Virus record (IMG/VR): IMGVR_UViG_3300036770_006296
Span: 62,001 to 126,000 of that record
Reading direction: 5' to 3' (one strand)
DNA length: 64,000 nucleotides
The position numbers and the translations under genes were made by a program. Below are positions 26,460-45,372 of this stretch, in pieces (position 1 is the first letter of the stretch; every line of letters begins with the position of its first letter). The notes beneath the pieces were generated by a model, which worked only from the letters and a program-made list of their open reading frames with translations, had not been told where the DNA came from and did not search any database.

Positions 26460-27269
26460 ATGAAATTATTTGATGAACGCCAGGTGAAGATGATGAAATA
26501 TCTTTCCTCTGGACTTCCACCACAGAGTAGATGGCGGTACAATCCGGTAACAGACCTTATAGATATAGAGGGGGATTTCAATTGTGGATGGACGGGTTTT
26601 AAAGATTTTAGAGGAGTTAAATTTGGAAAGATCACTGGACATTTCGATTGTTCCGGTATAGGACTCACCAGTTTAATAGGAGCTCCTGAAGAGGTCGGAA
26701 AAGATTTCAATTGTTCGAAAAACAATTTAACTAGTCTTGAAGGTGCACCTAAAAAGGTTGGTTATAGTTTCAATTGTTCAAAAAACTCTCTAGAAAGCCT
26801 AGAAGGAGGTCCTGAATATGTTAGGGGAAATTATGATTGTTCGAGTAATAAGCTCGTTACTCTTAAAGGATCCCCTAAAGCTTTACGCAGGGGGAGTAAA
26901 TTTATTTGCTCCAATAATCTTTTAAAAGATTTAAACGGGTTAATAGATAATGATTTTATGGGATTTTTTACATGTAAACGCAATCCCCTTACTAGTCTGG
27001 AAGGAGCACCAATCAACATAGAACCTTATTGGGATGGAAGTTATGAAGGAAAAATTTCATATTATGGAAATAAAGGTGTTTCGGGAAAGGTGCTCGAATT
27101 AATTCATCTCACGATGATTGAAAAGAAAGTGCCATTTATTATCGCTCTAGGTATTCTTAAGAACGAGATAAAATCGAGCGATCTTAAGAAGCTACTTCCT
27201 TCGGATCAGGAGAACGTAGAAGATGTACTAAAAGGAGCTAGCATGTTAGCTAAATTTGAATCTTTCTAA
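26460..27269 (+). CDS. LRR-21 family protein with KG-tag
   Basis: FNCSKNNLTSLEGAPKKVG repeats; ends KGASMLAKFESF. Confidence 0.88.
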   Translation: MKLFDERQVKMMKYLSSGLPPQSRWRYNPVTDLIDIEGDFNCGWTGFKDFRGVKFGKITGHFDCSGIGLTSLIGAPEEVGKDFNCSKNNLTSLEGAPKKVGYSFNCSKNSLESLEGGPEYVRGNYDCSSNKLVTLKGSPKALRRGSKFICSNNLLKDLNGLIDNDFMGFFTCKRNPLTSLEGAPINIEPYWDGSYEGKISYYGNKGVSGKVLELIHLTMIEKKVPFIIALGILKNEIKSSDLKKLLPSDQENVEDVLKGASMLAKFESF

Positions 27270-27331
27270 GAATCATTTTTTTATTTAGGTAGATTTTTCT
27301 ATATTTATGATAACCAATTAAACTTCCAGTT

Positions 27332-27559
27332 ATGGAAATGAACTTCATTAAAGTTATAGACGAGAGAACAAGAGACACAGTAGGATTTGCTGTTGTTGAG
27401 AAAGGCTCTCTGGAAGAGTCAATGATAGTTGACCGCTTCATAGACGAGGGAATGATTTTTGTAGCCTCGAATGAAGAGGAATTTAGTAATTTTGATGGAG
27501 ACTTCGTGAAGAGGTTTGGTAATGGAATGTTTTGTACTCACGCACCAATGGCAGATTAA
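27332..27559 (+). CDS. hypothetical protein
   Basis: EP and leader. Confidence 0.7.
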   Translation: MEMNFIKVIDERTRDTVGFAVVEKGSLEESMIVDRFIDEGMIFVASNEEEFSNFDGDFVKRFGNGMFCTHAPMAD

Positions 27560-27560
27560 T

Positions 27561-27833
27561 ATGACAAATAACGAAAGAATAGAGGCTTTAATAGTTGATT
27601 TAGTTGCTAAGAGTCCTTCGCAGGTTAATGTATGTGATTTGTTAATCGACTACATTAAGACTTTAACAAAAGACGAGATTATTGAATTCGTTGACAGAAC
27701 TACAACTGAAGTTTGGCCAGCTAGGTTTGACGAAGAAAGAAGCGGGTGTTTACACAAGGAGACATATGCTGCTGTTCGTCACGAGTCCGGGATGGCTTTG
27801 TACCGATGTAAAAAATGTAACGCCAAGGTATAA
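27561..27833 (+). CDS. hypothetical protein with C-terminal Zn ribbon (start corrected)
   Basis: CLH...CKKC. Confidence 0.65.
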   Translation: MTNNERIEALIVDLVAKSPSQVNVCDLLIDYIKTLTKDEIIEFVDRTTTEVWPARFDEERSGCLHKETYAAVRHESGMALYRCKKCNAKV

Positions 27834-27873
27834 ATCATTTTTTTCTTTAGATAGAATTTTCTACATTTACAAT

Positions 27874-28164
27874 ATGGAAACATCAGTAATTATAACACCT
27901 AACCCTTATGGCTTCGGAAGGAACTGGAGCTTACTTGTTAAGACGCCAGAACACACCAAGAGTTTTTATCTTGGACAGGACGTAAAGTTTTGTTCGAGAG
28001 TTCTTGGTATGGAGCCAAGAGATGTCGTTGAGGCTATAGGTACTGGAGAGATCTCGGAAGGTCAACCAGGAAATAAGAAGCTCGCCGAGTTTATTTGTGA
28101 GTGTTTAGAATTAAATGAAACCAACGTCATGGAGTTAGAGCCATGGAGTTTAAGCGCAGAATAA
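27874..28164 (+). CDS. hypothetical protein (start corrected)
   Basis: ATG just after EP. Confidence 0.75.
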   Translation: METSVIITPNPYGFGRNWSLLVKTPEHTKSFYLGQDVKFCSRVLGMEPRDVVEAIGTGEISEGQPGNKKLAEFICECLELNETNVMELEPWSLSAE

Positions 28165-28165
28165 T

Positions 28166-28489
28166 ATGGAAAGGATATACGTAGCAATCATTAAAGGACC
28201 TAAGGAATATTTACCAGGAGGCATTAAGTTCGAGAAGTTCGAAATCCATCAACATGAGATAGACGACTTTTTAGAGGATGGCGAAGAGGGAGAGACCGAG
28301 GAGGATGCTATCCAATACTATAAGGAAGAGTATGCTGCGGAGTGGGAGCAACGATGGTGCTCAGTTACTTTCCTGAGTGAGTCTGAGTTTAATTCCCTCT
28401 ATGGAGCGGTTCAGGAATTCTTTATCGACAATGGGGATGACGGAGAAGAGGAAGAGCAAGAAGAAGACGAATGGCAAGATTGGAAGTAA
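28166..28489 (+). CDS. highly acidic protein
   Basis: E/D-rich throughout. Confidence 0.8.
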   Translation: MERIYVAIIKGPKEYLPGGIKFEKFEIHQHEIDDFLEDGEEGETEEDAIQYYKEEYAAEWEQRWCSVTFLSESEFNSLYGAVQEFFIDNGDDGEEEEQEEDEWQDWK

Positions 28490-28499
28490 ATTAAAAAAT

Positions 28500-28724
28500 A
28501 TGAGACAGGTAGATATTAAAATTTCTGGTAGGAAGATCGAAGGCTATCCTACAGTTACAAGAACTATAAAGTTCAATAACGTCGAAGAATTTATATCAAA
28601 GGCGGATGAAGCTATAGACGAAACTGATTTTGGTAAGGTTGATTGCTATGTCGATAACTTTGATAATGTATTTAACGATGAGGAGATTAAGCTTCTAGAG
28701 GAGCAATGGTTTATTATTGAATAA
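28500..28724 (+). CDS. acidic hypothetical protein (start corrected)
   Basis: MRQVDIKISG...; stop abuts EP. Confidence 0.7.
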   Translation: MRQVDIKISGRKIEGYPTVTRTIKFNNVEEFISKADEAIDETDFGKVDCYVDNFDNVFNDEEIKLLEEQWFIIE

Positions 28725-28764
28725 ATCATTTTTTTAATTAATTAGAATTTTCTATATTTGAGAT

Positions 28765-29256
28765 ATGGCAACAAGGAGTAGAATAGGAATAGTAAACGAG
28801 GACGGAACAGTTTCCTCAATATATTGTCACTGGGACGGATACGTATCTCACCACGGTCCACTCTTACTTACGCATTATACAGACCGTGAAAAGGTTAAAG
28901 CCCTTATCGAATTGGGAAGTATTAGTGTCTTAGCTCAACACGTTGAGCCGCCTTCAGTCGTTGACGAGAATGATATCGATGGTAAGAAGGGTGAGAGGAT
29001 GCTTAAGAGATTTGGAGTCATAGGAAAACATTCTTTCTACGATCCACTACCAGGTGTTACTGTTGCTTATCATCGAGACAGAGGAGAGGAATACATCAAA
29101 CCGAGAATTAATAAGTCGCTAGAGGATTATTTTCTAGCAGACAATGAAGAATATGGCTACGTCTTTACCCTTGAGGGTGAATGGCTAGTCAAGTCGGGGT
29201 ACAACGAAAGTGCTCCAATTAGACCAATCGCTGAGGTTTTAGCAGAAGAAACTTAG
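28765..29256 (+). CDS. conserved phage protein (TRSxIG...YCHWDGY) with internal KG-tag
   Basis: ...DGKKGERMLKRFGVIG... Confidence 0.8.
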   Translation: MATRSRIGIVNEDGTVSSIYCHWDGYVSHHGPLLLTHYTDREKVKALIELGSISVLAQHVEPPSVVDENDIDGKKGERMLKRFGVIGKHSFYDPLPGVTVAYHRDRGEEYIKPRINKSLEDYFLADNEEYGYVFTLEGEWLVKSGYNESAPIRPIAEVLAEET

Positions 29257-29462
29257 TGTTTAATTGGTTTAACGCTGAGGGGATCGAGAAATCGGTCCCT
29301 TTTTTTGTGTGCTGGTTTTTTTGCAGCATATGCTAGATTCCCGGGGGCTCCTCAGGAATCTCCCACGGTTGCGTGGTAATTTTTTTTAGAAATTTCTGGA
29401 AATCATTTTTTATATTACATAGAAGTTTCTACATTAGCTATGTAAATCAAAAAACGCTACCA

Positions 29463-29813
29463 ATGAAAAGCCATTGTACACACTGCGGAGCCATACATGA
29501 AAGAAAGAGTAAATTCTGCTCAAAGAAATGTAGCGATGCAGCCTACAGAGCCAGTAAGAAAGAGGAACCGATCGAGCCAAAGGCTTCAACATCCGACCCA
29601 GAAGTAGTGGTCGAGAAATTCACCAAAGCATTCGGTTTTCCTGTCAGACTATATTGGAACCGTAGGTTAGAGGGTAAGAACTCCTCTTGCGCTAAAGCCG
29701 GTACAGTACTCGAGTTCGAGCAGATAACAAAAGTGGGCGGCAAGGTGATCTACAGGGTAAGAAGGGGTAAGCGTAACTTCTTTACCTCAAGTCGAGAGAT
29801 TGAGGAAATTTAA
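29463..29813 (+). CDS. Zn-finger plus beta-rich C-terminal domain protein
   Basis: CTHCG...FCSKKC N-term; C-term homologous to 51704/55657/58436. Confidence 0.8.
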   Translation: MKSHCTHCGAIHERKSKFCSKKCSDAAYRASKKEEPIEPKASTSDPEVVVEKFTKAFGFPVRLYWNRRLEGKNSSCAKAGTVLEFEQITKVGGKVIYRVRRGKRNFFTSSREIEEI

Positions 29814-29907
29814 GAAAGCCATGGGGGCAAAAATAGCCTGGGTTAAACGCCCAGGCTTTTTTATGAAATCATTTTTTTAATTAAATAGAATTTTCTACAT
29901 TTACAAT

Positions 29908-30219
29908 ATGAACAAAAGGGAAAACAAAAGAGGTGAGTTATTAGTTTGGCCGGGAATTGGTCCTTGTGGTAGCACGCCAGCGGAAGTTAAAGAATTCGAG
30001 AATTATGTGAGTTCGGAGTTCAACATTAGGGTGGAGTTCGTACAGGATTTGGAACGGAAGGACGGTAACGTCGACACAATCATTCGGGTGTTTGCCGAGG
30101 ATGCTTGGGGATCGGACCTCATCTTTAGAATGTTCTGCGTACATGTGGGGATCTATCCGATTGAAATGATTAGTCGCACAGATTATGATGTTGTTTCGGC
30201 TTCAAAAATTTTCAAATAA
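29908..30219 (+). CDS. hypothetical protein
   Basis: EP upstream. Confidence 0.7.
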   Translation: MNKRENKRGELLVWPGIGPCGSTPAEVKEFENYVSSEFNIRVEFVQDLERKDGNVDTIIRVFAEDAWGSDLIFRMFCVHVGIYPIEMISRTDYDVVSASKIFK

Positions 30220-30291
30220 TTTCCAAAATCATTTTTTTTATCAAGTAGAATATTCTACTTTAGCAATGTAAACCAATAAACACAAATAAAA

Positions 30292-31314
30292 ATGGCAAGA
30301 ACAAAAAAAGCAGAAGGGTCGGTAACGACCGAGACAACGGCTAAGAAAGGTCTTAGTGAAGAGACAAAAGCAAAGATCTCTGAGGCGTTAAAACGCAGAA
30401 AGACTTCAGTGGTCGAAGCAGCGGAAGCGCTATCTCCTAAGTTGGTAGCGGATGAGTCCAAAATCAAGGAGGAAGGAAACATCGTTACTCTTAACGACTA
30501 CTTCAAAGTCGAGAAGGGGACTTTCGAGATACTCAAGCACAACATCGGCTATGGTATCAATACGATGCTTATCGGGGCAACGGGTACTGGAAAGACGGAA
30601 GTCGTGGCTAACATCGCTAAGGTGTTCAATGTTCCGCTGACTATCTTCGACATGGGTACAATGACCGATCCTGTAATGGGACTTGTGGGTACTCACGTCA
30701 TCACAGTTGAGAATGGGGTGACTAAGTCGGAGTTCAAACGCTCTCGCTTCTCGGAACTCATTCAGCAACCAGGTATCATACTCTTAGACGAGATCTCCCG
30801 AGCCGGAGCGATGGCTAACAACCTTCTCTTCCCTTGTCTCGACTTCCGTAGAGAGTTACCGATGGAGTACTCGTTCCACGACACAACTCCAATCCCGGTT
30901 CACCCACAGTGCGTATTCTTCTCAACGGCTAACATGGGAAGTCAATATACGGGAACTCACAAATTAGACCGTGCCTTACTTGACCGTTTCATGCTCATCG
31001 AAGTAGACTCGATCAAACCAGAGGACATCATCGCAACACTAACCGCAGAGTTTCCGAAAATCACTAAGACGAAAATCAAGAAGTTGGTAAGCGTGTTCAC
31101 CAAAATCAACAAGGAACACGACGAGTTCAAAATCTCGTTCAACCTCTCAGTTCGTCACCTTAAGACTATCGCCAAATTGGTCTCTAACGGCTTCACAATC
31201 TACGACGGTTATGTCGCTCTTTGTAAAGGTCTCGGTAGTCAAGAAGGTTTGAAAGCGATTAACGCAATCTTGGACGATGCTAAAACCTCAACGGATACAG
31301 ATACAGAATCCTAA
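30292..31314 (+). CDS. MoxR-class AAA+ ATPase (CobS/CbbQ/NorQ-like)
   Basis: GATGTGKT, ILLDEISR, NMGSQYTGTHKLDRALLDRF. Confidence 0.9.
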   Translation: MARTKKAEGSVTTETTAKKGLSEETKAKISEALKRRKTSVVEAAEALSPKLVADESKIKEEGNIVTLNDYFKVEKGTFEILKHNIGYGINTMLIGATGTGKTEVVANIAKVFNVPLTIFDMGTMTDPVMGLVGTHVITVENGVTKSEFKRSRFSELIQQPGIILLDEISRAGAMANNLLFPCLDFRRELPMEYSFHDTTPIPVHPQCVFFSTANMGSQYTGTHKLDRALLDRFMLIEVDSIKPEDIIATLTAEFPKITKTKIKKLVSVFTKINKEHDEFKISFNLSVRHLKTIAKLVSNGFTIYDGYVALCKGLGSQEGLKAINAILDDAKTSTDTDTES

Positions 31315-31433
31315 TTCGTAAGGACTCAACAGGACTGGCGGCAAAACACCGCCAGTCTTTTTTTTGAAATCATTTTTTTCTCTAAGTAGAATTTTCTATA
31401 TTAGCTATGTAAACCAATTAAAACAAAAAAACA

Positions 31434-32984
31434 ATGGGTAAGTATGGATATGGATCTTGGGGCTCAGGCTACGGTAGGAAGACTTGGTCTTCAACATCGG
31501 GCTGGGAGAACTCACACTACGGAGGGTACAATCGACTAATTTACGATTATCCCTTCATCAAGTTCGATTATAAGGCAAACATCGAAGTCTCGCAAGACTT
31601 AAGAACCCAATTAGGTATCTGGTCGGCGGAAAAGCTTATCAAGATGTATCTTATGAAATGTAAGGAGAAAGGACTTCTTAAACGTTTAATTCGTGAACGT
31701 ATAACTAAGAAAAACTTTCTTGGGCAGGAAAAACATTACGACGTTCTTAAGCTAGATAACGAAGTCGTTCTAGAAGCGGTGATGAAAGAGTTCAAAGAAT
31801 TTGCTCCTCTCTTCGACCACTATCGTAATGAGATACTTTCGAGTAGCCTACAAATCGAAGTTCCGCCACCAGGAAACGAAGGTGGAGGAGGACAAGGTAA
31901 AGGCGAAGGGGAAGACAAAAAAGAAGGCCAAGGTAAAGGAAAGGGTGAAGGCGAGGGAGAAGGTGAAGGAGAAGGTGAAGGTGAAGGTGAAGGAGAGGGC
32001 AAAGGTAAAGGACAAGGTAAAGGACAAGGCGAAGGGGAAGGCGAAGGGGAAGGCGAAGAAGGTAGAGGCGAGGGTAAAGGAAAACCGAGTAAGAAAGGCG
32101 GAGGTTGGGGACCTTCGGATGGTGATGCTCCGGACTTCAAAGAACTTGAACGAGTACTTAAGGAAATGTCGGAACAAAAACCTTTCGAGAGCTTTAAAGG
32201 TCTCGGAGCAGAATGTAACCCTAAATTCGTTCCACCAAAAAAGAATGCGAAAGACTACAAGTTCAAGACCGATGAGATTAGAAATGCCGAGATGATGCTC
32301 AAACAACTCGACATCAGTTTTGAACCAAAGAGTGACGAAGTAAAGAACCTTAAACTCGGTAAGCTTGACACTTCAAAATTGGCAGAAGTACCCGCAGGTA
32401 ATATCTCCGTCTACAAACAAACTTTGGAGGATCAAGATACGAAACCATTTGCGGTATGTGTGTTGGCAGACATGTCGGGTAGTATGCAAGGTGCTAGACT
32501 CGATACTCAACTTAAGGTACTTAACGCTTTATATCTTGCCTTAAGCGAAATTATACCGGAAGAGGACCTACACATTTACGGTCACAGTGGAAATTCGTCA
32601 GAACCTAAGATATACACCTTCTGTAATCCGTATCACCCAGACTACCGAAAGAATATTCAAGACTATTATAGGATAGAGAATAACACTAATTACGACGGGA
32701 TTGTTATAGAACAGGTACACAAAAAGATACGTGAGAAAACAGATCGCCCAGTAATTCTGATTAGTCTTTCTGACGGTCAACCTTGTGATAGCGTGGCAGA
32801 CATGAAACGAATTCTTGAAAGAGCTAGACGAGACTCATTCGTTACAGTAGGTATCGGTATTGGTACAGACTACGTCAAAAAACTCTACACTTATTCGAGA
32901 GTGGTACACGACGAAAAGCTACACGAAATGCCGAGAGAGGTAGCGGGAATTATCAACCATGTTGTTAAAGCCGAATTCAAATAA
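31434..32984 (+). CDS. vWA (MIDAS) protein, CobT-like, with (GE)n linker
   Basis: [13 protein letters not shown]; long GEGEGE tract. Confidence 0.88.
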
Positions 32985-33150
32985 ATCCATATCCATACCC
33001 GAGAAGGGGAAGACTTCGGTCTTCCCTTTTTTTTGTGGGCTAAACCTTAGTCCTGCCGGCAGATTCTCTGGGGAACCCCAGGAAACTGGATACAGAGATC
33101 ATTTTTTTCTTTAATTAGAATTTTCTACATTAGCTATGTAACCAATTAAT

Positions 33151-33867
33151 ATGAAAATACTAGGATTTAATTTCCTTACTCTAAGACAGATAATATTTTT
33201 AAACGAGTTCACTTATGGCAAGTGGACTCTTAACAAGAAGACTGGACTGGTCGATATAGAAGGAGATTTCAATTGTTCAGATAAAAAATTAACCGGCTTT
33301 AAAGGTGTTCGGTTTGGAGTGGTTACTGGGAGTTTCTATTGTTACGATAACAATCTCACAAGTCTTGAGGGAGCGCCACAAAAGGTTGGATGGTATTTCG
33401 ATTGCTCCCATAACTCTCTCACAAGTCTTGAGGGAGCGCCACAGAATGTTGGGAGGGATTTCCGTTGCTACAATAACAAGCTCACAAGTCTTGAGGGAGC
33501 GCCGCAGAAGGTTGGATGGAGTTTCTATTGCCCATATAACAGGCTCACAAGTCTTGAGGGAGCGCCACAGGAGGTTGGAGGGTGTTTCTATTGCTACAAT
33601 AACTCTCTCACAAGTCTTGTGGGAGCGCCACAGGAGGTTGGAGGGAGTTTCGATTTCTACGGTAATCCGATCTCAGAGAAGACGTTAAAGTTGGTATGGG
33701 AGACGATGAGAGATAATAAGATCGACTATTGGTTTGCTTTATCGATACTTAAGAGCCAGATCGAGAGTGAGGATTGGAAGAAGATGTCTATAGGCTTAGA
33801 CGAGAGATTATCTAAAGACGCTCTGAAGGGTATTTCAATGATGGATCGGTTTGGACATTTTGATTAG
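33151..33867 (+). CDS. LRR-21 family protein with KG-tag
   Basis: 63-bp repeats FxCxxNxLTSLEGAPQxVG; ends KGISMMDRFGHFD. Confidence 0.9.
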   Translation: MKILGFNFLTLRQIIFLNEFTYGKWTLNKKTGLVDIEGDFNCSDKKLTGFKGVRFGVVTGSFYCYDNNLTSLEGAPQKVGWYFDCSHNSLTSLEGAPQNVGRDFRCYNNKLTSLEGAPQKVGWSFYCPYNRLTSLEGAPQEVGGCFYCYNNSLTSLVGAPQEVGGSFDFYGNPISEKTLKLVWETMRDNKIDYWFALSILKSQIESEDWKKMSIGLDERLSKDALKGISMMDRFGHFD

Positions 33868-33931: not shown

Positions 33932-35440
33932 ATGGGTAAATATGGATATGGATCGTGGAATTCTTGGGGTTCCGGTTGGGGATCTGGAAAAGGAAAGGGT
34001 AGTGTTTCCGGATGGGAGAATTCGCACTTCGGTGGATACAACAGAGTACTAACGGATTACCCTTACATCAAGATCGACTTCGAACTTGATATTAAAGCGG
34101 GTAAAAAGATTGGAGAGGATCTCGGATCGTGGATGGGTGACAAACTAATCAAGCTTTATATTCTTAAAGCGAAGGAATTAGGTTTAATCGAGCAATTACA
34201 AACCGAGGTTGTTGAGCGGATGAAATTCTTGCAACTTAAAAAGTACGTAGTTGCAAAATTGGACGATGAGCTTGTGTTTTCCCTTATCTGTGGAGCTTAT
34301 ACCGAGCTAGCTCCTATGTTCGAACATTACAAAGAAGGGATCTTTGAAAGCACCCTAGAGATGGAAATAAAAGACGGAGAGGAGGGTAAGGGTAGTAAGA
34401 GCGATAAAGGAGAAGAGAACGAAGGCGAAGGTAAAGGAAAAGGTGAAGGCCAAGGCGAAGGCGAAAAACAGGGCGAGGGTCAAGGTGAAGGCCAAGGTGA
34501 AGGTGAAGGTGATGCAAAAGATTCACCAGGAAAAGGAACGGGTCAGCCTACAAGAAACGGTAAGACGATACATCAATACATGAACGATATAGGGGAGGTT
34601 AAACCTTATAGCTCGCATAGTTCGTTAAGTGACTTCTCCGAAAAACCTAAATTTATCTCGTTCGCTCAAAGAATAAAAGAGGAAGGAAAGTCTCCTTATA
34701 AATTCTCTCCAGTAGAGATAAAAGATGCCGAAGCTTTAATTAAGTTATTGGATATCGATTTTGACCCAAAAAGCGACGAGGTTAAAAATCTTAAGCTCGG
34801 TAAGCTAGACGTCAGTAAGATAGCAGAGGTACCCGCAGGTAATGTATCGGTCTACAAACAGATAGTCGAAGAACAAGATACCAAACCATTCTCCGTCTGT
34901 ATCTTAGCCGATATGTCTGGTAGTATGGGATATGGTAATCGGATAGCTTCTCAGCGTCATATATTAAACTCGCTTTATCTGGCAATGTCGCAGATACTTC
35001 CGCCAGATAAACTTTACATCTACGGACACAGCGGAGAATACACCCCGGAGATCTATACGTTCTATAGTCCTTACGATCCCGACTACGAAAGGAACATCAA
35101 ATACTACCAGAAAGTACATTGGTGTCAGAACTACGACGGTCCGGTTATCGAAGCTATCCATAAGAAGATACGAGAAAACTCAGAAGACCGTATTATCTTC
35201 ATATCACTATCCGACGGTGAACCAGCAGGTAACAACTACGGAGGTCTTAAAGATAACGAAGAGCTCAAAAGAATACTTGAGAGAGCTAGACGAGACTCAT
35301 TCGTTACAGTAGGTATCGGTATTGAAGCAGGCCACGTATCAAGCCTATACACATACGCCAAACCAGTATGGGATTTATCAACCCTACCGAAAGACGTAGC
35401 AGGTATCATCAATCAAGTGGTTCGAGCCGAGTTCAAGTAA
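33932..35440 (+). CDS. second vWA (MIDAS) paralog
   Basis: [15 protein letters not shown]; same [10 protein letters not shown]-term and GE linker. Confidence 0.88.
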   Translation: MGKYGYGSWNSWGSGWGSGKGKGSVSGWENSHFGGYNRVLTDYPYIKIDFELDIKAGKKIGEDLGSWMGDKLIKLYILKAKELGLIEQLQTEVVERMKFLQLKKYVVAKLDDELVFSLICGAYTELAPMFEHYKEGIFESTLEMEIKDGEEGKGSKSDKGEENEGEGKGKGEGQGEGEKQGEGQGEGQGEGEGDAKDSPGKGTGQPTRNGKTIHQYMNDIGEVKPYSSHSSLSDFSEKPKFISFAQRIKEEGKSPYKFSPVEIKDAEALIKLLDIDFDPKSDEVKNLKLGKLDVSKIAEVPAGNVSVYKQIVEEQDTKPFSVCILADMSGSMGYGNRIASQRHILNSLYLAMSQILPPDKLYIYGHSGEYTPEIYTFYSPYDPDYERNIKYYQKVHWCQNYDGPVIEAIHKKIRENSEDRIIFISLSDGEPAGNNYGGLKDNEELKRILERARRDSFVTVGIGIEAGHVSSLYTYAKPVWDLSTLPKDVAGIINQVVRAEFK

Positions 35441-37001: not shown

Positions 37002-37020
37002 ACTTAAATTAAAAAAAAAC

Positions 37021-37594: not shown

Positions 37595-38005
37595 ATGCAA
37601 TGTGTTCAATGCGGTGCTAATCACGAAAGAAAGGGTATGTACTGTTCTAAAAGCTGTACGGATAAAGCATACAGAGAAAGAAAGAAATTAAAAGATCTTA
37701 AACTAAAGTATAATCACGAGGAAACCCCCGAGGAAGAATCTGAACCTCATGTAAACATACCAGAGGAAAAGGGTGAAAAACAAAGATGGTGTAACTTCTG
37801 TGGCGCTACTATCGAGAATTCCCCTAAGCTAGGGTTCTGCGACGGACAACACGAACGGGACTACTGGCGATCGATAAGCTTAAATCTCCCGCTTAAGATA
37901 AGAATCGACTCTAAAACAATAGTAGAGACTCGGAGGTACCACAAGGTGCAAGACATAATAGAGGCTATGCTCAGCCGAAACAAAATGGGTGTCACCTTCT
38001 TTTGA
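37595..38005 (+). CDS. double Zn-finger protein
   Basis: CVQCG...YCSKSC; WCNFCG...FCD...H. Confidence 0.8.
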   Translation: MQCVQCGANHERKGMYCSKSCTDKAYRERKKLKDLKLKYNHEETPEEESEPHVNIPEEKGEKQRWCNFCGATIENSPKLGFCDGQHERDYWRSISLNLPLKIRIDSKTIVETRRYHKVQDIIEAMLSRNKMGVTFF

Positions 38006-38043
38006 AACTTTTTAGTGGTTTTATCTATAATTCGAAAATTCAT

Positions 38044-38334: not shown

Positions 38335-38403
38335 ATTTCTGAATCATTTTTTTCTTCATATAGAAATTTCTATATTTGAGATAACCAATTAAATCAAATA
38401 GAA

Positions 38404-38679: not shown

Positions 38680-38684
38680 AAGGG

Positions 38685-39119: not shown

Positions 39120-39292
39120 TTTGATTGATTAACAATAAGAGCCTAGGATTTTATCCTAGGCTTTTTTGTGTGCTAAGGTTTTGCAGCATATGCTAGATGC
39201 ACTGGGGAACCCCAGGAAGTTTAATCAGGAATCATTTTTTTCTTTAAGTAGAATTTTCTATATTAGCTAGGTAATCAATAAAACAAAAAGAC

Positions 39293-39889
39293 ATGCCTGG
39301 AATATTAATGGATCTAAGAAAATTAACGGAATACCAACCTTGGTTATTTAGAAACAAACACATGCAGCCAGTTATGGAAGCTCTTATGGAAGCACGTATA
39401 AATATCTTTAAGGACGAGGTACTATCCTCATTGAAAGGAGGTGATTCACTAACCGAGGATCAGATACGTATACTAGCCCTTTCTACCGATGCTTCTATTC
39501 ACATTAGGAAGGATGGAAAGATTAACGTGAATGGAATTTTTAACTGCTCTGGATTAGGACTAACTGATTTGTGTGGACTTCGATTTGGTAGAGTAAAAGG
39601 AAGATTTATTTGCAGAAATAATTCTATAACAAATCTTGAAGGGTTTCCTATTGAGGGAGATCCGGAGGTATTCTTTGACAGAAACAAAGGTATATCCGAC
39701 GGAACCTTAGATCTTATATTTGAAGCTATGAGAAAGAACCAAATGGACTATTGGTCGGCTTTATGTGTTGTTAAAAGCGAGATAGACTCTAAAGAATGGG
39801 TTGTTATGTCTAAAGGGATAGACGAGAGACTTTCACAAGACGCTCAGAAGGGAGCTTCGATGTTGGGACGATTTGGACATTTTGATTAA
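39293..39889 (+). CDS. minimal LRR-21 family member with KG-tag
   Basis: 1-2 repeats; ends KGASMLGRFGHFD. Confidence 0.85.
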   Translation: MPGILMDLRKLTEYQPWLFRNKHMQPVMEALMEARINIFKDEVLSSLKGGDSLTEDQIRILALSTDASIHIRKDGKINVNGIFNCSGLGLTDLCGLRFGRVKGRFICRNNSITNLEGFPIEGDPEVFFDRNKGISDGTLDLIFEAMRKNQMDYWSALCVVKSEIDSKEWVVMSKGIDERLSQDAQKGASMLGRFGHFD

Positions 39890-39929
39890 ATCATTTTTTT
39901 CTTTAAGTAGAATTTTCTACATTTATAGT

Positions 39930-40688
39930 ATGGAACTTAATAAAGAACAAATAGAATTTTTAAACGGGTTTACTAAAGGCAAATGGACTCTTAACAAGAA
40001 GACCGGACTAGTTGATATAGAGGGTTATTTTGATTGTTCATGTGAAGAATTAACCGATTTTAAAGGTGTTCGGTTTGGAGTGGTTACTGGGAGTTTCAAT
40101 TGCAGCGGTAACAATCTCAAAAGTCTTGAGGGAGCGCCACAAGAGGTTGGACTGGGTTTCGATTGCGACAATAACAATCTCAAAAGTCTTGTGGGAGCGC
40201 CACAGAAGGTTGGAGATTATTTCAATTGTTACTGGAACAAGCTCACAAGTCTAGTGGGAGCGCCACAAGAGGTTGGAGGGATTTTCGATTGTTCCAGTAA
40301 CAAGCTCACAAGTCTAGTGGGAGCGCCACAAGAGGTTGGAGAGATTTTCGATTGTTCCTATAACAAGCTCACAAGTCTAGTGGGAGCGCCACAGAAGGTT
40401 GGGCGTTTCGATTGTTGCTATAATAAGCTCACAAGTCTAGAGGGAGCGCCACAGAAGGTTGGGGAGGGTTTCTATTGCTACAATAACCCAATCTCGGAGA
40501 ATACTCTGAATTTAGTGTGGAACACTATGCAAGAAAAAAAGATCGACTACTGGTCGGCTTTATGTATTCTTAAGAGTGAAATCTCAAGGAGTGATTTCGA
40601 GAATTTAGAGGGAGAGTTGGAAAAGAGACTTTCACAAGACGCTCAGAAGGGGGTTTCTATGTTGGGACGGTTTGGACATTTTGATTAA
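39930..40688 (+). CDS. LRR-21 family protein with KG-tag (start corrected)
   Basis: ~6 repeats; ends KGVSMLGRFGHFD. Confidence 0.9.
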   Translation: MELNKEQIEFLNGFTKGKWTLNKKTGLVDIEGYFDCSCEELTDFKGVRFGVVTGSFNCSGNNLKSLEGAPQEVGLGFDCDNNNLKSLVGAPQKVGDYFNCYWNKLTSLVGAPQEVGGIFDCSSNKLTSLVGAPQEVGEIFDCSYNKLTSLVGAPQKVGRFDCCYNKLTSLEGAPQKVGEGFYCYNNPISENTLNLVWNTMQEKKIDYWSALCILKSEISRSDFENLEGELEKRLSQDAQKGVSMLGRFGHFD

Positions 40689-40743
40689 ATCATTTTTTCT
40701 TTAAATAGATTTTTCTACATTTGACTTAACCAATTAAAATAAT

Positions 40744-41082
40744 ATGAAAGACAATTTTGATGTAACCTATGTTCCTTGCGGTTCGATAAAACCTGATAAC
40801 AAGGATTACGAAAGAGCACTCGATTTTGCATACTCGGATGATCCAGAAACACCGCAAGCATCTAAGGCGGAGAAGATGTCCAAGCTCATAAAAGATCCTC
40901 TTAAGTTAGTACGAAGATCCAAAGCCGTAGTAGGTATCTGGGGTACTGACGACTACTACAACAACAATGAAGGAACAGAAAATGTTTGGCTTCCGTTCAA
41001 GAGAGCTTTGATCGCTATGGGATTCACCCCCGATCAAATAGCGGAGATAAGTGAATTTGAAATTGACGAAGAAAATTTATAA
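40744..41082 (+). CDS. hypothetical protein
   Basis: EP upstream. Confidence 0.75.
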   Translation: MKDNFDVTYVPCGSIKPDNKDYERALDFAYSDDPETPQASKAEKMSKLIKDPLKLVRRSKAVVGIWGTDDYYNNNEGTENVWLPFKRALIAMGFTPDQIAEISEFEIDEENL

Positions 41083-41158
41083 AATAATTTCAGGAATCAT
41101 TTTTTATATTAAATAGAATTTTCTACTTTAGCTACATAAACCAATTAAATCTTTTAAC

Positions 41159-41581
41159 ATGGCTGAAAAAAATCAAACAATCACAGGAGGACTCGGCATT
41201 CGGGAAGGCTATTTCGAAGTTGCTCAAGAACGAGTCGTTAAAAAACTTAAAGACCTCGACACCATCTCTGATGCGTTAGAGGCAGTTGCGGAAGAGATCC
41301 GGGACGAGGAGTTCGGAGAGTCTAATCTTCGAGTATCTGATTACGAGAAAAAGCTTATTTTGTCGGGATTCATTATGGGATGTGTTCGCTCAGAAGCTCA
41401 GATGTCGCAAAAGCTCGACGAGCTAAAAATGATGTTTCATCTTATGGCGATGAGTAAGCAGGTCGGCACGAACAAAGACGGAAGTCCTATCTTAGGAGGT
41501 ATGATCGACGCTAAAGATATGCCGAAGGAGCTTCGAGATCTTTTAGAAAAATTATCAGGCGAGGATGACGAAGACGATTAA
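41159..41581 (+). CDS. hypothetical protein
   Basis: EP upstream. Confidence 0.75.
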   Translation: MAEKNQTITGGLGIREGYFEVAQERVVKKLKDLDTISDALEAVAEEIRDEEFGESNLRVSDYEKKLILSGFIMGCVRSEAQMSQKLDELKMMFHLMAMSKQVGTNKDGSPILGGMIDAKDMPKELRDLLEKLSGEDDEDD

Positions 41582-41711
41582 TTGGTTAAGGTGAGCAACC
41601 CGAGGGGGAAATAGGATGCCTCCTCGGGTTTTAGAAATTTCCAAAAATCATTTTTTTAATTAGAATAAAATTCTTATATTAGCTAAGTAAATCAATTAAA
41701 GATATAGAGAT

Positions 41712-41960
41712 ATGGCATCAAAAACGAAAATTAGTCATTCGGATCTTAAGAAGAAATTAAATGGTGGTTCACTAAAGTTTTATTACCGAAAGGTTGGAGG
41801 CGAGCTTAGAGAAGCACTCGGAACCTTAGACTTAAGTCGAATCCCTAGTGTTAATCAACCTAAAGGTGGAAAGGTTTCTGGAGACCAAACCGCTTACTAC
41901 GATTTGGAAGTTGGAGCATGGAGATCGGTTTCAAGCTCGCAAGAAATTTGGATAGATTAG
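41712..41960 (+). CDS. DUF2693/WYL_2 paralog
   Basis: FYYRKVGGELREALGT...YYDLEVGAWRS. Confidence 0.75.
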   Translation: MASKTKISHSDLKKKLNGGSLKFYYRKVGGELREALGTLDLSRIPSVNQPKGGKVSGDQTAYYDLEVGAWRSVSSSQEIWID

Positions 41961-41962
41961 TC

Positions 41963-42247
41963 ATGGCGAAAAAAATTAAGGACGAAGAAATAATGCACGA
42001 GCTCTATAGAAGAGCTTTTGCTGTGAGTACGCCTCCGGGTGATTTTGATGAGTTAATGACTAAAGCAGAGATCAACGAGTTTGGACAAAAAGTAATTCCT
42101 TTTATGGACTACGAATGTCCGCACGAAGTAATGGAAAAAATACTAGAGGATGCGATGGTTGAATTCAAAGTACCTAAGCATAGAATCAAGGCTTTCTCAT
42201 TTAACTTCTGGCTTGGATGTTCACCTAAATCAGCCCAACCAAAATGA
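41963..42247 (+). CDS. hypothetical protein (start corrected)
   Basis: ATG 2 nt after the previous stop. Confidence 0.75.
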   Translation: MAKKIKDEEIMHELYRRAFAVSTPPGDFDELMTKAEINEFGQKVIPFMDYECPHEVMEKILEDAMVEFKVPKHRIKAFSFNFWLGCSPKSAQPK

Positions 42248-42380
42248 TGAAATCATTTTTTTCAATTAATAGAATTTTCTACATTAGCTATGTAACCCAA
42301 TTAGGTCTTGTTAAGTATCACCAGAGAGATGATATGATGAGTCTGGTAAGGTTCCAGGCGACAAACTAAAAGTAAAGAAT

Positions 42381-42563
42381 ATGAGACGCTACAATCCAAA
42401 CAATTTAATAATTTCAATTTTAGCTGTAATCGGGATCTCTTTTGCATTTGAGAGCTATCCAATTATTGTAGGTCTTGTTTCTTTCGGTGTTGGGATAGCT
42501 TACAAATCCCTTTCCTGGGAGAAAGGGAATTCAGACAAGAAGATCGGAGACGTCCTTGATTAA
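42381..42563 (+). CDS. small membrane protein
   Basis: Two hydrophobic segments. Confidence 0.55.
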   Translation: MRRYNPNNLIISILAVIGISFAFESYPIIVGLVSFGVGIAYKSLSWEKGNSDKKIGDVLD

Positions 42564-42728
42564 CTTGTAAGTAGGTAAAAAGATTAGGCTTCCTTATGGA
42601 AGCCTTTTTTGTGTGGTAAATCCTAGGGTCTGCATGGAGATGCACTGGGGAACCCCAGGAAGTTTGAGCAGGAATCATTTTTTTCTTCATGTAGAATTTT
42701 CTACATTTGTATTGTAACCAATTACAAT

Positions 42729-42983
42729 ATGAATATGAAATTACTAAAATTAAGAAGAGTTAAAAGAGGTCCATTCAATTTTTATGAGAGAGGAGGATAC
42801 ACTAGCTCTAATGTAGTAGAGGTAAAACTTTTCTTCTTATTCATCCCAATCAAAACAGTACGCGTTTATCGTGAATCCTATATTGGTAAAATGGAGCCTC
42901 TCGAGGATTTAAGTTTTAAAGCAAAAACTTTTAGATACGTCGAGGCTTTGGGTGTTGTTGCTTCAATAATACTTAACAAATGA
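42729..42983 (+). CDS. hypothetical protein
   Basis: EP upstream. Confidence 0.65.
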   Translation: MNMKLLKLRRVKRGPFNFYERGGYTSSNVVEVKLFFLFIPIKTVRVYRESYIGKMEPLEDLSFKAKTFRYVEALGVVASIILNK

Positions 42984-43327
42984 CGAAAGTAACTATAGGT
43001 GATTTAGAATATGACTTATCTCATAGGGAAAGTATGACCTTCGAAGAAGCAAAGTCTCTTTGCATTGATGGATGGAGAATACCAAAGATTGAAGAGCTAG
43101 CTATATTAGGTTCAGAATACTACGTTAAAGGTAAAAAGATTTTCTTAGGTGGAAGACATTTCTCTCCTAGATTATATTGGACGCCAGGTATGGTTAAGAA
43201 TATGAGAGGTGGACTCATAGACGAAACAAAAGGATGGTCCACTCTATTCTATTTTGATCTTAATTGTGGATGGTTCATTTCACCTCACGAGAACAAGCAT
43301 TTTCTAATATTGGTTAGGAATATTTAG
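42980..43327 (+). CDS. DUF1566/Lcl-like protein
   Basis: MTFEEAKSLCIDGWRIPKIEEL...YWT. Confidence 0.55.
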   Translation: MTKVTIGDLEYDLSHRESMTFEEAKSLCIDGWRIPKIEELAILGSEYYVKGKKIFLGGRHFSPRLYWTPGMVKNMRGGLIDETKGWSTLFYFDLNCGWFISPHENKHFLILVRNI

Positions 43328-43389
43328 AAATCATTTTTTATATTAAATAGAATTTTCTACATTTACATTAACCAATTAAAACAGTAACT

Positions 43390-43593
43390 ATGACACCAAA
43401 AGCAAAAGAGGTATTTATTAACGTAACTCCTCAAGATGAATTGAACCAAAGAATCGCTGATGCTGCAGCAAACTGCGAGGAGTTAATCCACAACCTTCGT
43501 TTAAGCTATGATATCCAACCTAACAAGAGGTTATCCGATATCATCATAGCTCAGGAGGTGTCATTAAGGGAACTTAAAGCCCTTGTAAAATAA
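43390..43593 (+). CDS. small coiled-coil protein
   Basis: EP upstream. Confidence 0.7.
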   Translation: MTPKAKEVFINVTPQDELNQRIADAAANCEELIHNLRLSYDIQPNKRLSDIIIAQEVSLRELKALVK

Positions 43594-43708
43594 GCGGGGA
43601 CCCTCCCAGGAGGCCACGCGTATACGTGCGTAGCAATAGATAAGATCAGGAATCATTTTTTTATTCAGTTAGAGTTTTCTACATTAGCATTATTAAACAA
43701 ACGAAACT

Positions 43709-44029
43709 ATGAAATATTTTGGAATTGCAGATGCCCACGGAATTGAAAGCTTCATTAAAGGAGACCCAACCGAGGGAGAACACTCTCATCAAGCTATGAT
43801 TCTAAACCTTAGAGCAGGAGCTAACCGTCACAGACACGCTGTAGTCTATGTGGTTGACATACCAGAAGACACTGCAGAAGAGGTAGATGATCTTATCATT
43901 GCTGGTAATTATATAGGTGCATTAGAACATCTAAAAGATTCAGTGAAATCCCTTCAACTAACTAGTCTACCCGGCGCAGAAAAGAGCTGGGGACTTATCC
44001 CGAATCCAGATTTGGATCCTTACAACTAG
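43709..44029 (+). CDS. hypothetical protein
   Basis: EP upstream. Confidence 0.75.
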   Translation: MKYFGIADAHGIESFIKGDPTEGEHSHQAMILNLRAGANRHRHAVVYVVDIPEDTAEEVDDLIIAGNYIGALEHLKDSVKSLQLTSLPGAEKSWGLIPNPDLDPYN

Positions 44030-44182
44030 GCGGAACCTGTCCGCTGCGGCCTGGGTGAATCACCCAGGCTTTTTTGTGCGCTAAGGTTTCCGAATGATTC
44101 TTTGATTCGCTCTCTGGGGAACCCCAGGAATCTTGATCAGAAATCATTTTTTTATTTGTAGAAAAATCCATACATTAGCTAC

Positions 44183-44512
44183 ATGAAAGATAAGGATATA
44201 CTAGCGAGAATAAAAGAACTATCAAATGAAGATTGGTTCCAGAACGGTGATGATTCACCGGAAGAGGTCTACGAGGAGCTTTACGGGATAGAAGCTGAAA
44301 ACGATGATCTTGCATATCTTCTCGAGTTAACTATTGGTGGACCGGGATACTCGGATGTTTGGCTTTCACGAGGTGTACTTATAGGAGATGTGCTTGCTTA
44401 CGGAGATGGATTAGAAGAGGGTGAGGAAGTTACTGAGGATGATATCTACGAAGATAATCAAATGTTTATTGCGGAAAGAAGAATGGGTTTACTTGATGAA
44501 ATAATTTTGTAA
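44183..44512 (+). CDS. highly acidic protein
   Basis: E/D-rich. Confidence 0.75.
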   Translation: MKDKDILARIKELSNEDWFQNGDDSPEEVYEELYGIEAENDDLAYLLELTIGGPGYSDVWLSRGVLIGDVLAYGDGLEEGEEVTEDDIYEDNQMFIAERRMGLLDEIIL

Positions 44513-45372
44513 TGGGATTAACTAAAGATCAAATAGAATGGCTAAATAGCTGCCACGGATGGGCTGGTCTAAAAAAGACTAAATGGACATTTAACGAAGA
44601 AACCGGACTAGTAGACGTAGAGGGTGATTTTATAACCCCCAATTCATATGGTTCTTGTAAAGCTTTAGGACGGAAAGGAGGTGGTGGATATGGAGGTATT
44701 AAGGATTTTATGGGTATTAAATTCGGTACTGTTACTGGGACCTTCGATTGCTCGTATAACAATCTAACAAATATAGAGGGAGCGCCTATTTACGTAGGAG
44801 GGGATTTCGATTGCTCATATAACAAACTCACAAGCTTAGTGGGAGCACCACAAGAAGTTGGAGGTTCCTTCAGTTGTATAGATAATAATCTCACAAGTCT
44901 TATTGGATCTCCTCGAAGGGTTAAGCTTCACTTCCACTGTGCTTATAACAAACTACCAAATCTAGTAGGAGCTCCTATGTACGTGGGAGGGGATTTCTGG
45001 TGCACTGATTTATCCAATGATCTACATATAGAAAGTCTGCACGGAGCAGAAGAATGTATAATAGGTGGAGATTTCGATTGTCATTACAACAAATTGAAAG
45101 ATTTAAAAGGTGCTCCTAGATTAATTTACGGTCAATTTATGGTCTATGGTAATTACGAAGGAAATTACAAAAGAGTTAAAAAAGATACATTCATTCTAAT
45201 AACTAGTACAATGAAAGAAAAAAATCTAGACTATTTTGGCGCTTTGTGCTTATTAAAAGATTCCCTCGATAAGAAGGAATGGAATAAGTTATCTAAAGGT
45301 ATAGACGAAAGATTGTCGAAAGAAGCCCAGAAGGGTCTTAGAATGTTGGACAAGTTTAAAATTTTTGAATAA
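44512..45372 (+). CDS. LRR-21 family protein with KG-tag
   Basis: GDFDCSYNKLTSLVGAP repeats; ends KGLRMLDKFKIFE. Confidence 0.9.
   Translation: MGLTKDQIEWLNSCHGWAGLKKTKWTFNEETGLVDVEGDFITPNSYGSCKALGRKGGGGYGGIKDFMGIKFGTVTGTFDCSYNNLTNIEGAPIYVGGDFDCSYNKLTSLVGAPQEVGGSFSCIDNNLTSLIGSPRRVKLHFHCAYNKLPNLVGAPMYVGGDFWCTDLSNDLHIESLHGAEECIIGGDFDCHYNKLKDLKGAPRLIYGQFMVYGNYEGNYKRVKKDTFILITSTMKEKNLDYFGALCLLKDSLDKKEWNKLSKGIDERLSKEAQKGLRMLDKFKIFE

Follow-up and report, generated by a model that had tools for sequence, protein, structure and literature searches.

Why would a phage maintain several dispersed LRR genes whose products end in the same short peptide? In immunity and among bacterial effectors, LRR proteins serve as classic programmable binders; what they do in phages has received essentially no study. 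We analysed 64,000 nucleotides (the window) from a freshwater jumbo phage, whose 206,617-bp record is ~81% complete. The whole record contains exactly five members of this LRR family, dispersed rather than clustered (Table 1). Our preferred reading, to which we assign a probability of about 0.5, is that they are fast-diversifying cysteine-ladder LRR binders that would act inside the cell before the late phase and share a docking peptide.

All five frames are open and intact, and they share one architecture, in which an N-cap precedes 1–6 canonical 21-aa units and the helical C-cap ends in the peptide KGxxMLx(R/K)FG (the KG peptide). This bears out the initial annotation, which had described five modular paralogs with about 1–6 units and a KG-tagged C-cap; the variable unit number is seen together with both caps and the short terminal peptide, and the tagged C-cap is present in 5 of 5. 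Tandem Repeats Finder recovered the 63-bp period reported for paralog 2 (33328–33660, 5.3 copies, 82% match) and detected it also in paralog 4 (40109–40487, 6.1 copies, 84% match) and paralog 5 (44743–44864, 1.9 copies). The N-cap had been described as missing from paralog 3. The literal WT.N..TGLVDIEG string is indeed missing there, but the N-cap hairpin survives as a divergent homologue, behind an additional N-terminal extension of ~50 aa. An orthologue of equal length in the related phage L146 marks paralog 3 as a stable member rather than a decayed copy.

Other members have their own peculiarities. Paralog 1 has the most divergent synonymous codon usage of the five, paralog 2 is flanked by the two VWA paralogs, and paralog 5 carries a Gly-rich N-cap insert, one long irregular unit and degenerate units. 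The start of paralog 5 overlaps the stop codon of 44183–44512 by 1 nt, which makes it the second gene of a two-gene unit. For paralog 4, the ATG at 39930 is a more sensible start than the upstream TTG at 39873. Judged by eye, none of the five translations has a signal peptide or a membrane-like hydrophobic N-terminal stretch.

Table 1 Features of the LRR loci, in window coordinates.
Feature	Coordinates	Strand	Details
Class-1 motif	26403..26430	+	upstream of paralog 1
LRR paralog 1	26460..27269	+	269 aa; 4 canonical 21-aa units plus degenerate ones
KG peptide, paralog 1	27231..27266	+	variant KGASMLAKFESF
Class-1 motif	33104..33131	+	upstream of paralog 2
LRR paralog 2	33151..33867	+	238 aa; 5 canonical units
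KG peptide, paralog 2	33826..33864	+	
Class-1 motif	39237..39264	+	upstream of paralog 3
LRR paralog 3	39293..39889	+	198 aa; one canonical unit; divergent N-cap
KG peptide, paralog 3	39848..39886	+	
Class-1 motif	39896..39923	+	upstream of paralog 4; directly 3' of paralog 3 stop codon
LRR paralog 4	39930..40688	+	252 aa; 6 canonical units, one of 20 aa
KG peptide, paralog 4	40647..40685	+	last helix in the model, residues 236–247
Degenerate class-1 motif	44140..44176	+	after CTGGGGAACCCCAG hairpin; upstream of 44183–44512 / 44512–45372
LRR paralog 5	44512..45372	+	286 aa; 5 canonical units
KG peptide, paralog 5	45331..45369	+	variant KGLRMLDKFKIFE
Sigma-70 family gene	50075..50920	+	Pfam regions r2 and r4; within class-1 block

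The unit consensus, F-x-C-x-x-N-x-L-T-S-L-(E/V)-G-A-P-Q-x-V-G-x-x, contains the LRR core F1-x-C3-x-x-N6-x-L8-x-x-L11 at a 21-aa period. Compared with the PDB, a 41-member family profile matched InlJ best (3bz5, E 1.8e-20) and SspH1 at E 6e-7. An AlphaFold2 model of paralog 4 (pLDDT 95.7) predicts a curved LRR solenoid with a beta-strand every 21 residues, one parallel strand per unit on the concave side, and a five-helix C-cap. Foldseek matches to this model were LRR domains throughout the top ranks, led by those of SspH1, IpaH and YopM (TM 0.5), and structural matches in BFVD were LRR proteins of giant viruses and 'uncultured Caudovirales'. The Pfam LRR models stayed below their curated thresholds (LRR_4, 21 bits vs a cut-off of 27; LRRNT, 18 vs 25.8) because the family is too divergent for them; the family profile still finds InlJ. 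The repeat had been called unrelated to the 20-aa array. That statement stands at the profile level (hhalign probability 0.4%) but not at the level of repeat class, since both are short bacterial-type LRRs; the 20-aa array also matches YopM (E 5.8e-9) and SspH1. The C-terminal domain, a ~60-aa helical bundle in the model, has no Pfam match and just 17 related clusters, in which the examined sequences were LRR-family tails or spurious repeat matches. PADLOC defence-system models gave no match at E up to 0.1.

When might these proteins be made? A 28-nt promoter-like motif, class 1 (consensus TTTTTCTTTAAnTAGAnTTTTCTACATT), occurs 23 times in the window vs 0 times in shuffles. Genome-wide there are 25 copies, all on the plus strand and all within a 33-kb block at 85.7–118.8 kb, and every LRR gene or gene pair appears to have its own copy of this phage-specific putative promoter. 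The sigma-70 gene in the block has a syntenic copy in L146. A class-2 motif, GATATATA(A/T), is found only at genes outside the block, with zero copies inside; tail-fibre-like and other large genes carry it, unlike the LRR genes. Class-1 genes are probably transcribed ahead of the class that serves structural genes, and from promoter classes and gene content alone it is plausible that the LRR genes are early. Upstream regions are SD-poor and A-rich, from which we would guess that the host is probably of Bacteroidota type, without Shine–Dalgarno use.

The KG peptide extends well beyond the LRR family. Genome-wide, 16 open frames carry this stretch of 11–12 residues (KGxxMLx(R/K)FG plus hydrophobic ones), namely those of the five LRR and 11 non-LRR proteins, and it lies at C-termini, near N-termini or internally. 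Ten of the 11 non-LRR proteins, all but genome 126371–126880, were scanned for functionally named Pfam or PHROG matches and had none. K, G, M and F are invariant over the 16 copies while synonymous codons differ, so the peptide is kept as protein and not as DNA. It is also kept in orthologues of related phages and restricted to this phage lineage. Its distribution supports the view that the KG peptide is a module separate from the LRR part. At the peptide, the block-mean pLDDT of the paralog 4 model falls to ~78–88. Class-2 genes carry it too (genome 68674, 141165 and 152683), which means that it is no early-only label. We rejected the idea of a sliding-clamp-binding tail, having found no gp45/beta-clamp match in the record and both halves of the split family-B polymerase untagged.

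A shared peptide on diverse proteins recalls virion cargo. The KG peptide could be a capsid- or virion-docking signal, comparable to the T4 capsid targeting sequence or to the cargo peptides of encapsulins, with the LRR proteins packaged and ejected together with the DNA or displayed as adhesins. T4 internal proteins have been described as a highly diverse defence set with only a short conserved targeting sequence in common (PMC3012670), and a lineage-specific peptide is what one would expect if its receptor were phage-encoded. Four KG-tagged class-2 genes begin with an MKHIKLFE-type N-terminal leader, which is seen on 27 open frames besides the five LRR genes, and the presence of the peptide on class-2 genes fits a virion-related address no worse than an early one. 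In other huge phages, LRR homologues bear N-leaders of this kind themselves, together with lineage-specific tails common to non-LRR proteins, and on Goslar virions LRR domains have been suggested to recognise the host. We nevertheless regard a virion role for the five window proteins as unlikely: their genes share the class-1 block with the sigma factor and numerous small open frames, not with tail-fibre-like genes, the class-2 motif never accompanies them, and all five proteins lack the leader. No capsid, portal or scaffold gene was recognisable in the record.

Alternatively, the KG peptide may itself bind lipid, as an amphipathic helix that places tagged proteins at the cytoplasmic face of the inner membrane. 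The C-terminal targeting sequence of MinD is an amphipathic membrane anchor that can be transplanted (PMC8155659), and the E. coli version, ending KKGFLKRLFGG, resembles the KG peptide in make-up. The KG peptide is terminal, 11–12 residues long and helical in the model, with a net charge of +1 to +3 and a hydrophobic moment of 0.3–0.9 in most copies. Amphipathicity would suffice for lipid binding, yet K, G, M and F do not vary across 16 unrelated proteins, and such invariance despite differing codons speaks for a specific protein receptor. Moments are low in three N-terminal copies (0.13–0.30), and another copy lies inside its protein (residue 75 of 163). We therefore hold a lipid anchor to be quite improbable. 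Most likely, the KG peptide would dock all tagged proteins to one common partner, which is more likely to be a protein than bare lipid. As a feature of 16 otherwise unrelated proteins, it could give access to a hub organising a sizeable part of the phage's uncharacterised proteome.

In our preferred reading, the solenoid is the working part. As the initial annotation had it, the x sites vary on near-identical scaffold DNA: paralogs 2 and 4 are identical at most synonymous sites of their scaffold codons, and their x codons differ mainly at first and second bases, which are far more variable than third positions. Across 93 different units from the lineage, the highest entropies (2.3–3.1 bits) fall at positions 2, 4, 5, 7, 20 and 21; F1, C3, N6, L8, L11, G13 and P15 are near zero. 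In LxxLxLxxNxL, the variable positions are equivalent to x3, x5, x7, x8 and x10, the residues along the concave strand. With the Nei–Gojobori method, applied to 11 units from paralogs 2 and 4, scaffold codons have a dN/dS of 0.10 (dS 0.27) and variable codons one of 3.1 (dS 0.23), the latter inflated because these positions were picked after their variation had been seen. These comparisons support a concentration of variation on the predicted binding face, above synonymous change.

The repeats also turn over rapidly among relatives. Population variation, which the initial annotation had named as a check, is evident in that near-identical genomes differ almost solely in their LRR genes. L148 and L149 show 0.00% divergence across nearly all non-LRR genes; one LRR gene differs by a 63-bp unit indel and 3.2% divergence, another is a 14% diverged allele, and one whole additional LRR gene is present. 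LRR genes occupy different slots of a syntenic backbone in L146, L148 and the window. Within the window's own population, run X5 matches perfectly over ~5.5 kb yet has 32 differences in 233 nt inside the array of paralog 4, and two runs contain in-frame unit-number joints, although these data are short assembled contigs within the repeat, in which paralogs may be collapsed or cross-mapped. Further afield, the N-cap and LRR part has unnamed relatives both in huge phages and in some bacterial MAGs, with more than 3,700 of them from one length-limited search. Their arrays reach 14 genes, in phages of 150–400 kb, and the proteins end in other lineage-specific tails. Candidate address labels include, besides the KG peptide of this phage, the tails ...GFKGMI and ...KPSWLKGKIIS and the N-leader MKHIKLFE, all from other lineages.

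Could this turnover be neutral, a selfish expansion in which units slip and recombine with no selected binding function? Near-identical 63-bp units are prone to slippage and unequal recombination, and promoter repeats flank every LRR gene. We consider this reading very improbable, given that all LRR frames are intact, that face positions change above dS on a constrained scaffold, that x codons vary so unevenly across their three positions, that orthologues (including that of the one-unit member) are conserved in related phages, and that thousands of relatives share the same architecture. A diversity-generating retroelement or other targeted mutator is extremely improbable: variable codons mostly keep their third base, superficially like the codon design of retroelement variable regions, but the 81% complete record has no reverse transcriptase (RVT_1) match, the variation lies between tandem units and paralogs rather than between a template and a variable repeat, and changes are not limited to adenines.

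We favour five small, soluble cysteine-ladder LRR proteins belonging to one fast-diversifying family, with a protein as the most likely target of the hypervariable concave beta-face. Both the number of units and the residues of the face would change quickly through unit gain and loss and through recombination among paralogs. The initial annotation's idea of early adaptors with a variable binder and an address tag is partly supported, with recruitment or sequestration of host proteins as its conjectural side. The most likely role would be to bind, block or relocate strain-variable host factors soon after infection, with defence or envelope-associated proteins as candidates. A predicted binding face that evolves faster than silent sites, encoded at almost the only loci by which near-identical genomes differ, has the signature of an arms-race interface, making this family a good place to look for new phage–host interactions (anti-defence, takeover or exclusion). 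A broader and rather doubtful extension is that huge phages run a general address-label system, in which short lineage-specific terminal peptides route unrelated proteins to one phage-defined destination. The cysteine-ladder LRR family would then be the chief diversified cargo, a repertoire of binders that is germline-encoded, shuffled as cassettes and directed against variable host factors, reaching the cell early by immediate transcription (here) or by packaging and ejection (in others).

Among known systems, InlJ (3bz5) shares the 21-residue unit whose second core position is Cys (x-C-x-x-N-x-L-T-x-L), and the NCBIfam similarity is local. InlJ is a large, secreted, wall-anchored Listeria surface protein, whereas the phage proteins have no evident signal peptide by eye, differ in both caps and carry G-A-P-Q-x-V-G in the convex loop. 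Scores against NCBIfam internalin_J reached 16–45 bits vs a cut-off of 1700, and we rejected membership of the InlJ class, as neither alignment nor model contains a signal peptide, internalin N-cap, inter-repeat Ig-like domain or wall anchor. IpaH, SspH1, SspH2 and YopM, whose family of LRR domains gave the best structural matches, likewise have short 20–22-aa 'LPX' units, and in these effectors a small soluble LRR is the target-recognition module of a protein acting inside another cell. The phage proteins differ in lacking a NEL E3-ligase domain and a type III secretion context. Membership of the NEL effectors was likewise rejected (SspH2 model, 26–27 bits vs a cut-off of 1243; no Pfam match at E up to 1; a helical bundle as C-terminus).

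Large DNA viruses have multigene families of repeat proteins (LRR proteins of giant viruses, and ankyrin and FNIP proteins), which resemble the phage family in having many paralogs per genome and variable repeat number. They are proteins of eukaryotic viruses, mostly of unassigned role, and in the literature covered neither a shared terminal peptide nor concave-face hypervariability is reported for them. T4 internal proteins offer a parallel in diverse, fast-evolving proteins of one phage with a short conserved terminal address peptide. The T4 signal, however, is N-terminal and removed by the prohead protease, whereas the KG peptide is mostly C-terminal and the LRR genes belong to a non-structural promoter class. 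Finally, the MinD tail is likewise a short terminal helix, basic and hydrophobic, with glycines on either side (PMC8155659), but the KG peptide is invariant at residue level across unrelated proteins and has N-terminal and internal copies, all of which favours a protein receptor.

Five plus-strand open frames in the window encode one family of LRR proteins, as the initial annotation had proposed, and we found no further members in the record. Their 21-residue (63-bp) units number from one to six per protein, and Tandem Repeats Finder places the 63-bp period at 33328-33660 (5.3 copies, within the gene starting at 33151), 40109-40487 (6.1 copies) and 44743-44864 (1.9 copies), in agreement with the repeat range and period first described. 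An N-terminal helix and hairpin are common to all five proteins. The shared N-cap also held up, except that in 39293 it is not absent, as had been stated, but divergent and set behind an extra extension of ~50 residues. Each protein closes with a C-terminal region of ~60 residues ending in the 12-residue KG peptide (KGxxMLx(R/K)FG), and the earlier description of a variable binder joined to an address tag is a fair summary of this architecture.

Positions of the repeat families, sigma factor gene, leaders and class-2 motifs in the window
Feature	Window position	Strand	Remarks
LRR paralog	26460-27269	+	4 canonical units
LRR paralog	33151-33867	+	5 canonical units
LRR paralog	39293-39889	+	1 canonical unit
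LRR paralog	39930-40688	+	6 canonical units
LRR paralog	44512-45372	+	5 canonical units
20-aa array	15253-19444	-	nine tandem paralogs, units LxSLxTLPPGVEFxNxGxV
Sigma-70 family gene	50075-50920		regions r2 and r4; inside class-1 block; conserved in L146
Leader MK(H/Y)(I/L)(K/R)LFExF, starts	57205, 61536, 62245, 63335	+	
Leader MK(H/Y)(I/L)(K/R)LFExF, starts	10220, 13691, 20056, 22759	-	
Class-2 motif	841, 2962, 6649, 57179, 63323	+	
Class-2 motif	10250	-	

Comparing the five proteins with Pfam, PHROGs, NCBIfam and PADLOC returned only sub-threshold LRR matches or PHROGs of unknown function, with Pfam LRR models staying below threshold on the family. A 41-member family profile matched the cysteine-ladder LRR of internalin J (E 1.8e-20) and SspH1 (E 6e-7), and unit residues F1, C3, N6 and L8 fall on L4, L6, N9 and L11 of the LRR consensus. 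The AlphaFold2 model of the 252-residue protein (mean pLDDT 95.7) comprises an N-cap, a short strand per 21 residues and a five-helix C-cap whose last helix is the KG peptide, where confidence goes down to 78-88. Foldseek neighbours of this model include the LRR domains of SspH1, IpaH, YopM and InlJ, together with LRR proteins of giant viruses and uncultured phages.

We pooled 93 distinct units, taken from the window and from three syntenic relatives. Unit positions 2, 4, 5, 7, 20 and 21 have entropies of 2.3-3.1 bits, and positions 1, 3, 6, 8, 11, 13 and 15 have almost none. In the LRR motif the variable positions are x3, x5, x7, x8 and x10, which face the solvent on the concave strand and at its exit. 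Paralogs 33151 and 39930 bear out the observation that these sites vary over near-identical scaffold DNA: their scaffold codons match even at most silent sites, and their x codons differ mostly at the first two bases. Among 11 units of this pair, Nei-Gojobori estimates gave a dN/dS of 3.1 (dS 0.23) for the seven variable codons and 0.10 (dS 0.27) for the fourteen scaffold codons, a contrast that is descriptive and not a formal test because the site classes were picked after viewing the data. Independently of that choice, changes at first and second bases outnumber those at third bases within the variable codons. These results add evidence that the variation sits on the LRR binding face, whose sites evolve faster than silent ones. 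Retroelement-driven variation was dropped as an explanation; no reverse transcriptase was found in the record, which makes such a mutator unlikely.

The relatives syntenic with the window, namely L146 (ENA assembly) and the pair L148 and L149 (one JGI sample each), carry the same LRR family, KG peptide and promoter motif, and their LRR genes vary in number and position. L148 has at least nine LRR members of 3-13 units each within 20 kb. Between L148 and L149, divergence is 0.00% over nearly all non-LRR genes; one LRR gene differs by a 63-bp indel and 3.2% divergence (401 versus 380 residues), another is present as a 14% diverged allele, and L148 has an extra 322-residue LRR gene. Such differences add evidence that near-identical genomes vary mainly in their LRR genes. 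For the window's own phage, the population data are assembled contigs: run X5 is identical over ~5.5 kb, yet has 32 differences in 233 nt within the 39930 array, and in-frame joints correspond to two units in X5 and to four in X8, variants that are suggestive only because assembly artefacts are possible in a repeat. Contigs of several runs also join promoter copies in 39880-44181 (39928 with 42638 and 42667 with 44137, among others). Such joints are most likely artefacts of the assembly graph, or else genuine deletions or rearrangements between ~50-nt promoter repeats, and we left them out of the evidence for variation.

The 21-residue repeat had been called unrelated to the separate 20-aa array. 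We found no profile-profile match between them, but the array profile itself matches the YopM LRR (E 5.8e-9), and the window therefore contains two different short bacterial-type LRR families. The array proteins have a conserved C-terminal tail in common, ending ...LLNLMIKRGLFI, and form the second of these families, distinct from the first and with a tail of its own.

The KG pattern is found on 16 open frames of the genome, comprising the five LRR proteins and 11 others. In these 11 it lies at the extreme C-terminus (six proteins), near the N-terminus at residue 11 (three) or further in (at residue 42 in a protein of 169 residues and at residue 75 in one of 163). Among the ten of these that were scanned, none has a Pfam match or a PHROG with a named function; one of the ten matches only PHROGs of unknown function. 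The K, G, M and F of the peptide are invariant and synonymous codons differ freely; the peptide is therefore kept by protein-level selection, not recent DNA copying. Orthologues in related phages retain it. Searching 1.84 billion representatives with the C-cap plus peptide brought up just 17 related clusters, and the back-translated peptide pattern gave 28 matches in IMG/VR, of which only 3-4 were real, all in relatives of this phage. The C-cap and peptide as a mobile module was rejected: the sequences examined from the 17 clusters are LRR-family tails, save two spurious repeat proteins.

Invariance of these residues across unrelated proteins argues for a specific protein as the putative receptor of the peptide, and its restriction to one lineage suggests that the receptor is phage-encoded or host-lineage-specific. 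We also considered that the peptide might be a capsid or virion address, for which the T4 capsid targeting sequence would be a precedent, or a MinD-like lipid-binding helix, given a composition resembling the E. coli MinD tail and a hydrophobic moment of 0.3-0.9 in most copies. A clamp-binding tail, suggested by a resemblance to the tail of RB69 polymerase, was dropped, as no clamp was found (the 354-residue neighbour of a clamp-loader-like AAA+ protein gave no clamp signal) and the polymerase lacks the tag.

A near-identical leader, MK(H/Y)(I/L)(K/R)LFExF, opens 27 unrelated open frames across the genome; it resembles the T4 capsid targeting sequence. Twelve leader-bearing frames follow a class-2 promoter-like motif at a distance of up to 70 nt, and no leader-bearing frame has the class-1 motif. 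Leader and KG peptide occur together on at least three proteins (window starts 13691 on the minus strand, 64371 and 90683), and a degenerate form of the peptide closes a fourth frame that has the leader (89699). LRR homologues in other huge phages themselves open with leaders of this kind.

The class-1 motif (28 nt, consensus TTTTTCTTTAAnTAGAnTTTTCTACATT) has 23 copies in the window versus 0 in shuffles, and its 25 genome copies all lie on the plus strand, only within 85.7-118.8 kb. It stands directly upstream of four of the five LRR genes, and a degenerate copy precedes the two-gene unit whose last gene is 44512. Because E. coli-type sigma-70 hexamer pairs are not enriched (46 versus 45.7 in shuffles), the motif is not a standard -35/-10 promoter. 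The class-2 motif, (G)GATATATA(A/T), is found outside the class-1 block, where many start codons have it 5-30 nt upstream; it has 36 genome copies versus ~19 in simple shuffles, none of the 36 falling between 72.3 and 119.2 kb. Terminator-like hairpins exceed their number in shuffles (33 versus 14). Judged from the motifs, these are two mutually exclusive putative promoter classes: class 1 includes the sigma factor, and class 2 includes tail-fibre-neighbouring genes. The pattern fits class 1 being the earlier class, and class 2 may be the one read with the phage sigma factor.

The class-1 block has expanded through segmental duplication. Paralog pairs within it encode WYL_2-domain proteins (25587-25841 and 41712-41960), Cys-rich zinc-finger-like proteins (29373-29813 and 37595-38005) and KG-tagged proteins that have the peptide at residue 11 (46046-46588 and 47778-48260). 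A MoxR-type AAA+ ATPase (30292-31314) is followed by two paralogous ~500-residue proteins with long (GEGK)n low-complexity linkers (31434-32984 and 33932-35440), which read by eye as CobT/VWA-like without a supporting family match. LRR gene 33151 separates the genes of these two ~500-residue proteins here; the same two genes adjoin in L146 and L148.

The 206,617-bp record, assembled from JGI metagenome 3300036770 and estimated to be 81% complete, is covered by the window over bases 62,001-126,000. DNA near-identical to the window occurs in freshwater and subsurface metagenomes from at least four studies. We assign the record to a jumbo phage because it carries genes for ribonucleotide reductase, topoisomerase II, a split family-B polymerase, a Dda-like helicase, thymidylate synthase and a tail-fibre-like protein. 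The two polymerase genes lie beyond the window, 16 kb apart (genome 28919-30325 and 46516-47685). A Shine-Dalgarno-like 4-mer precedes only 9.4% of open frames in the record, and A makes up 49% of bases in the regions upstream of open frames. Few Shine-Dalgarno sites and A-rich upstream regions are typical of Bacteroidota-type hosts, and the phage probably has a host of this type. Megablast of 12 kb against phage records found no match; the closest cultured phage by tblastn, Vibrio phage VB_VaC_TDDLMA, has only the repeats in common, not the caps or KG peptide.

The N-cap and LRR part is widespread: a length-limited search with it retrieved more than 3,754 proteins at E up to 0.001, all unnamed, and ESM Atlas clusters of the family are 99-100% viral. 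IMG/VR has 166 stretches that encode relatives, with contigs as long as 413 kb and tandem arrays reaching 14 genes. The N-terminal leader and C-terminal tail of LRR relatives are specific to each lineage, and in at least one other lineage they also occur on non-LRR proteins. Bacterial MAG relatives include many copies in gut bins labelled 'Alphaproteobacteria', and some lie in Chlorobiaceae, including one isolate genome. Gut and rumen MAGs with the Alphaproteobacteria label (loci L084-L111 and others, such as MAG-R073 and Tb.RUG.243) hold dozens of tandem homologues with their own leader (MAELNDKFEFEQDGKTY...) and tail (...KAGYAAFKKK..ERE). These bins may be genuinely bacterial or may include mis-binned huge phages.

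The literature on LRR families in jumbo or huge phages yielded no description of this family, which is weak evidence of novelty because coverage was partial. We infer that the LRR genes are expressed early and that their targets would be host proteins, with the KG peptide plausibly serving as an address. The family would represent LRR binders, a known kind, in a phage setting that is new and well defined and with a terminal peptide in common.
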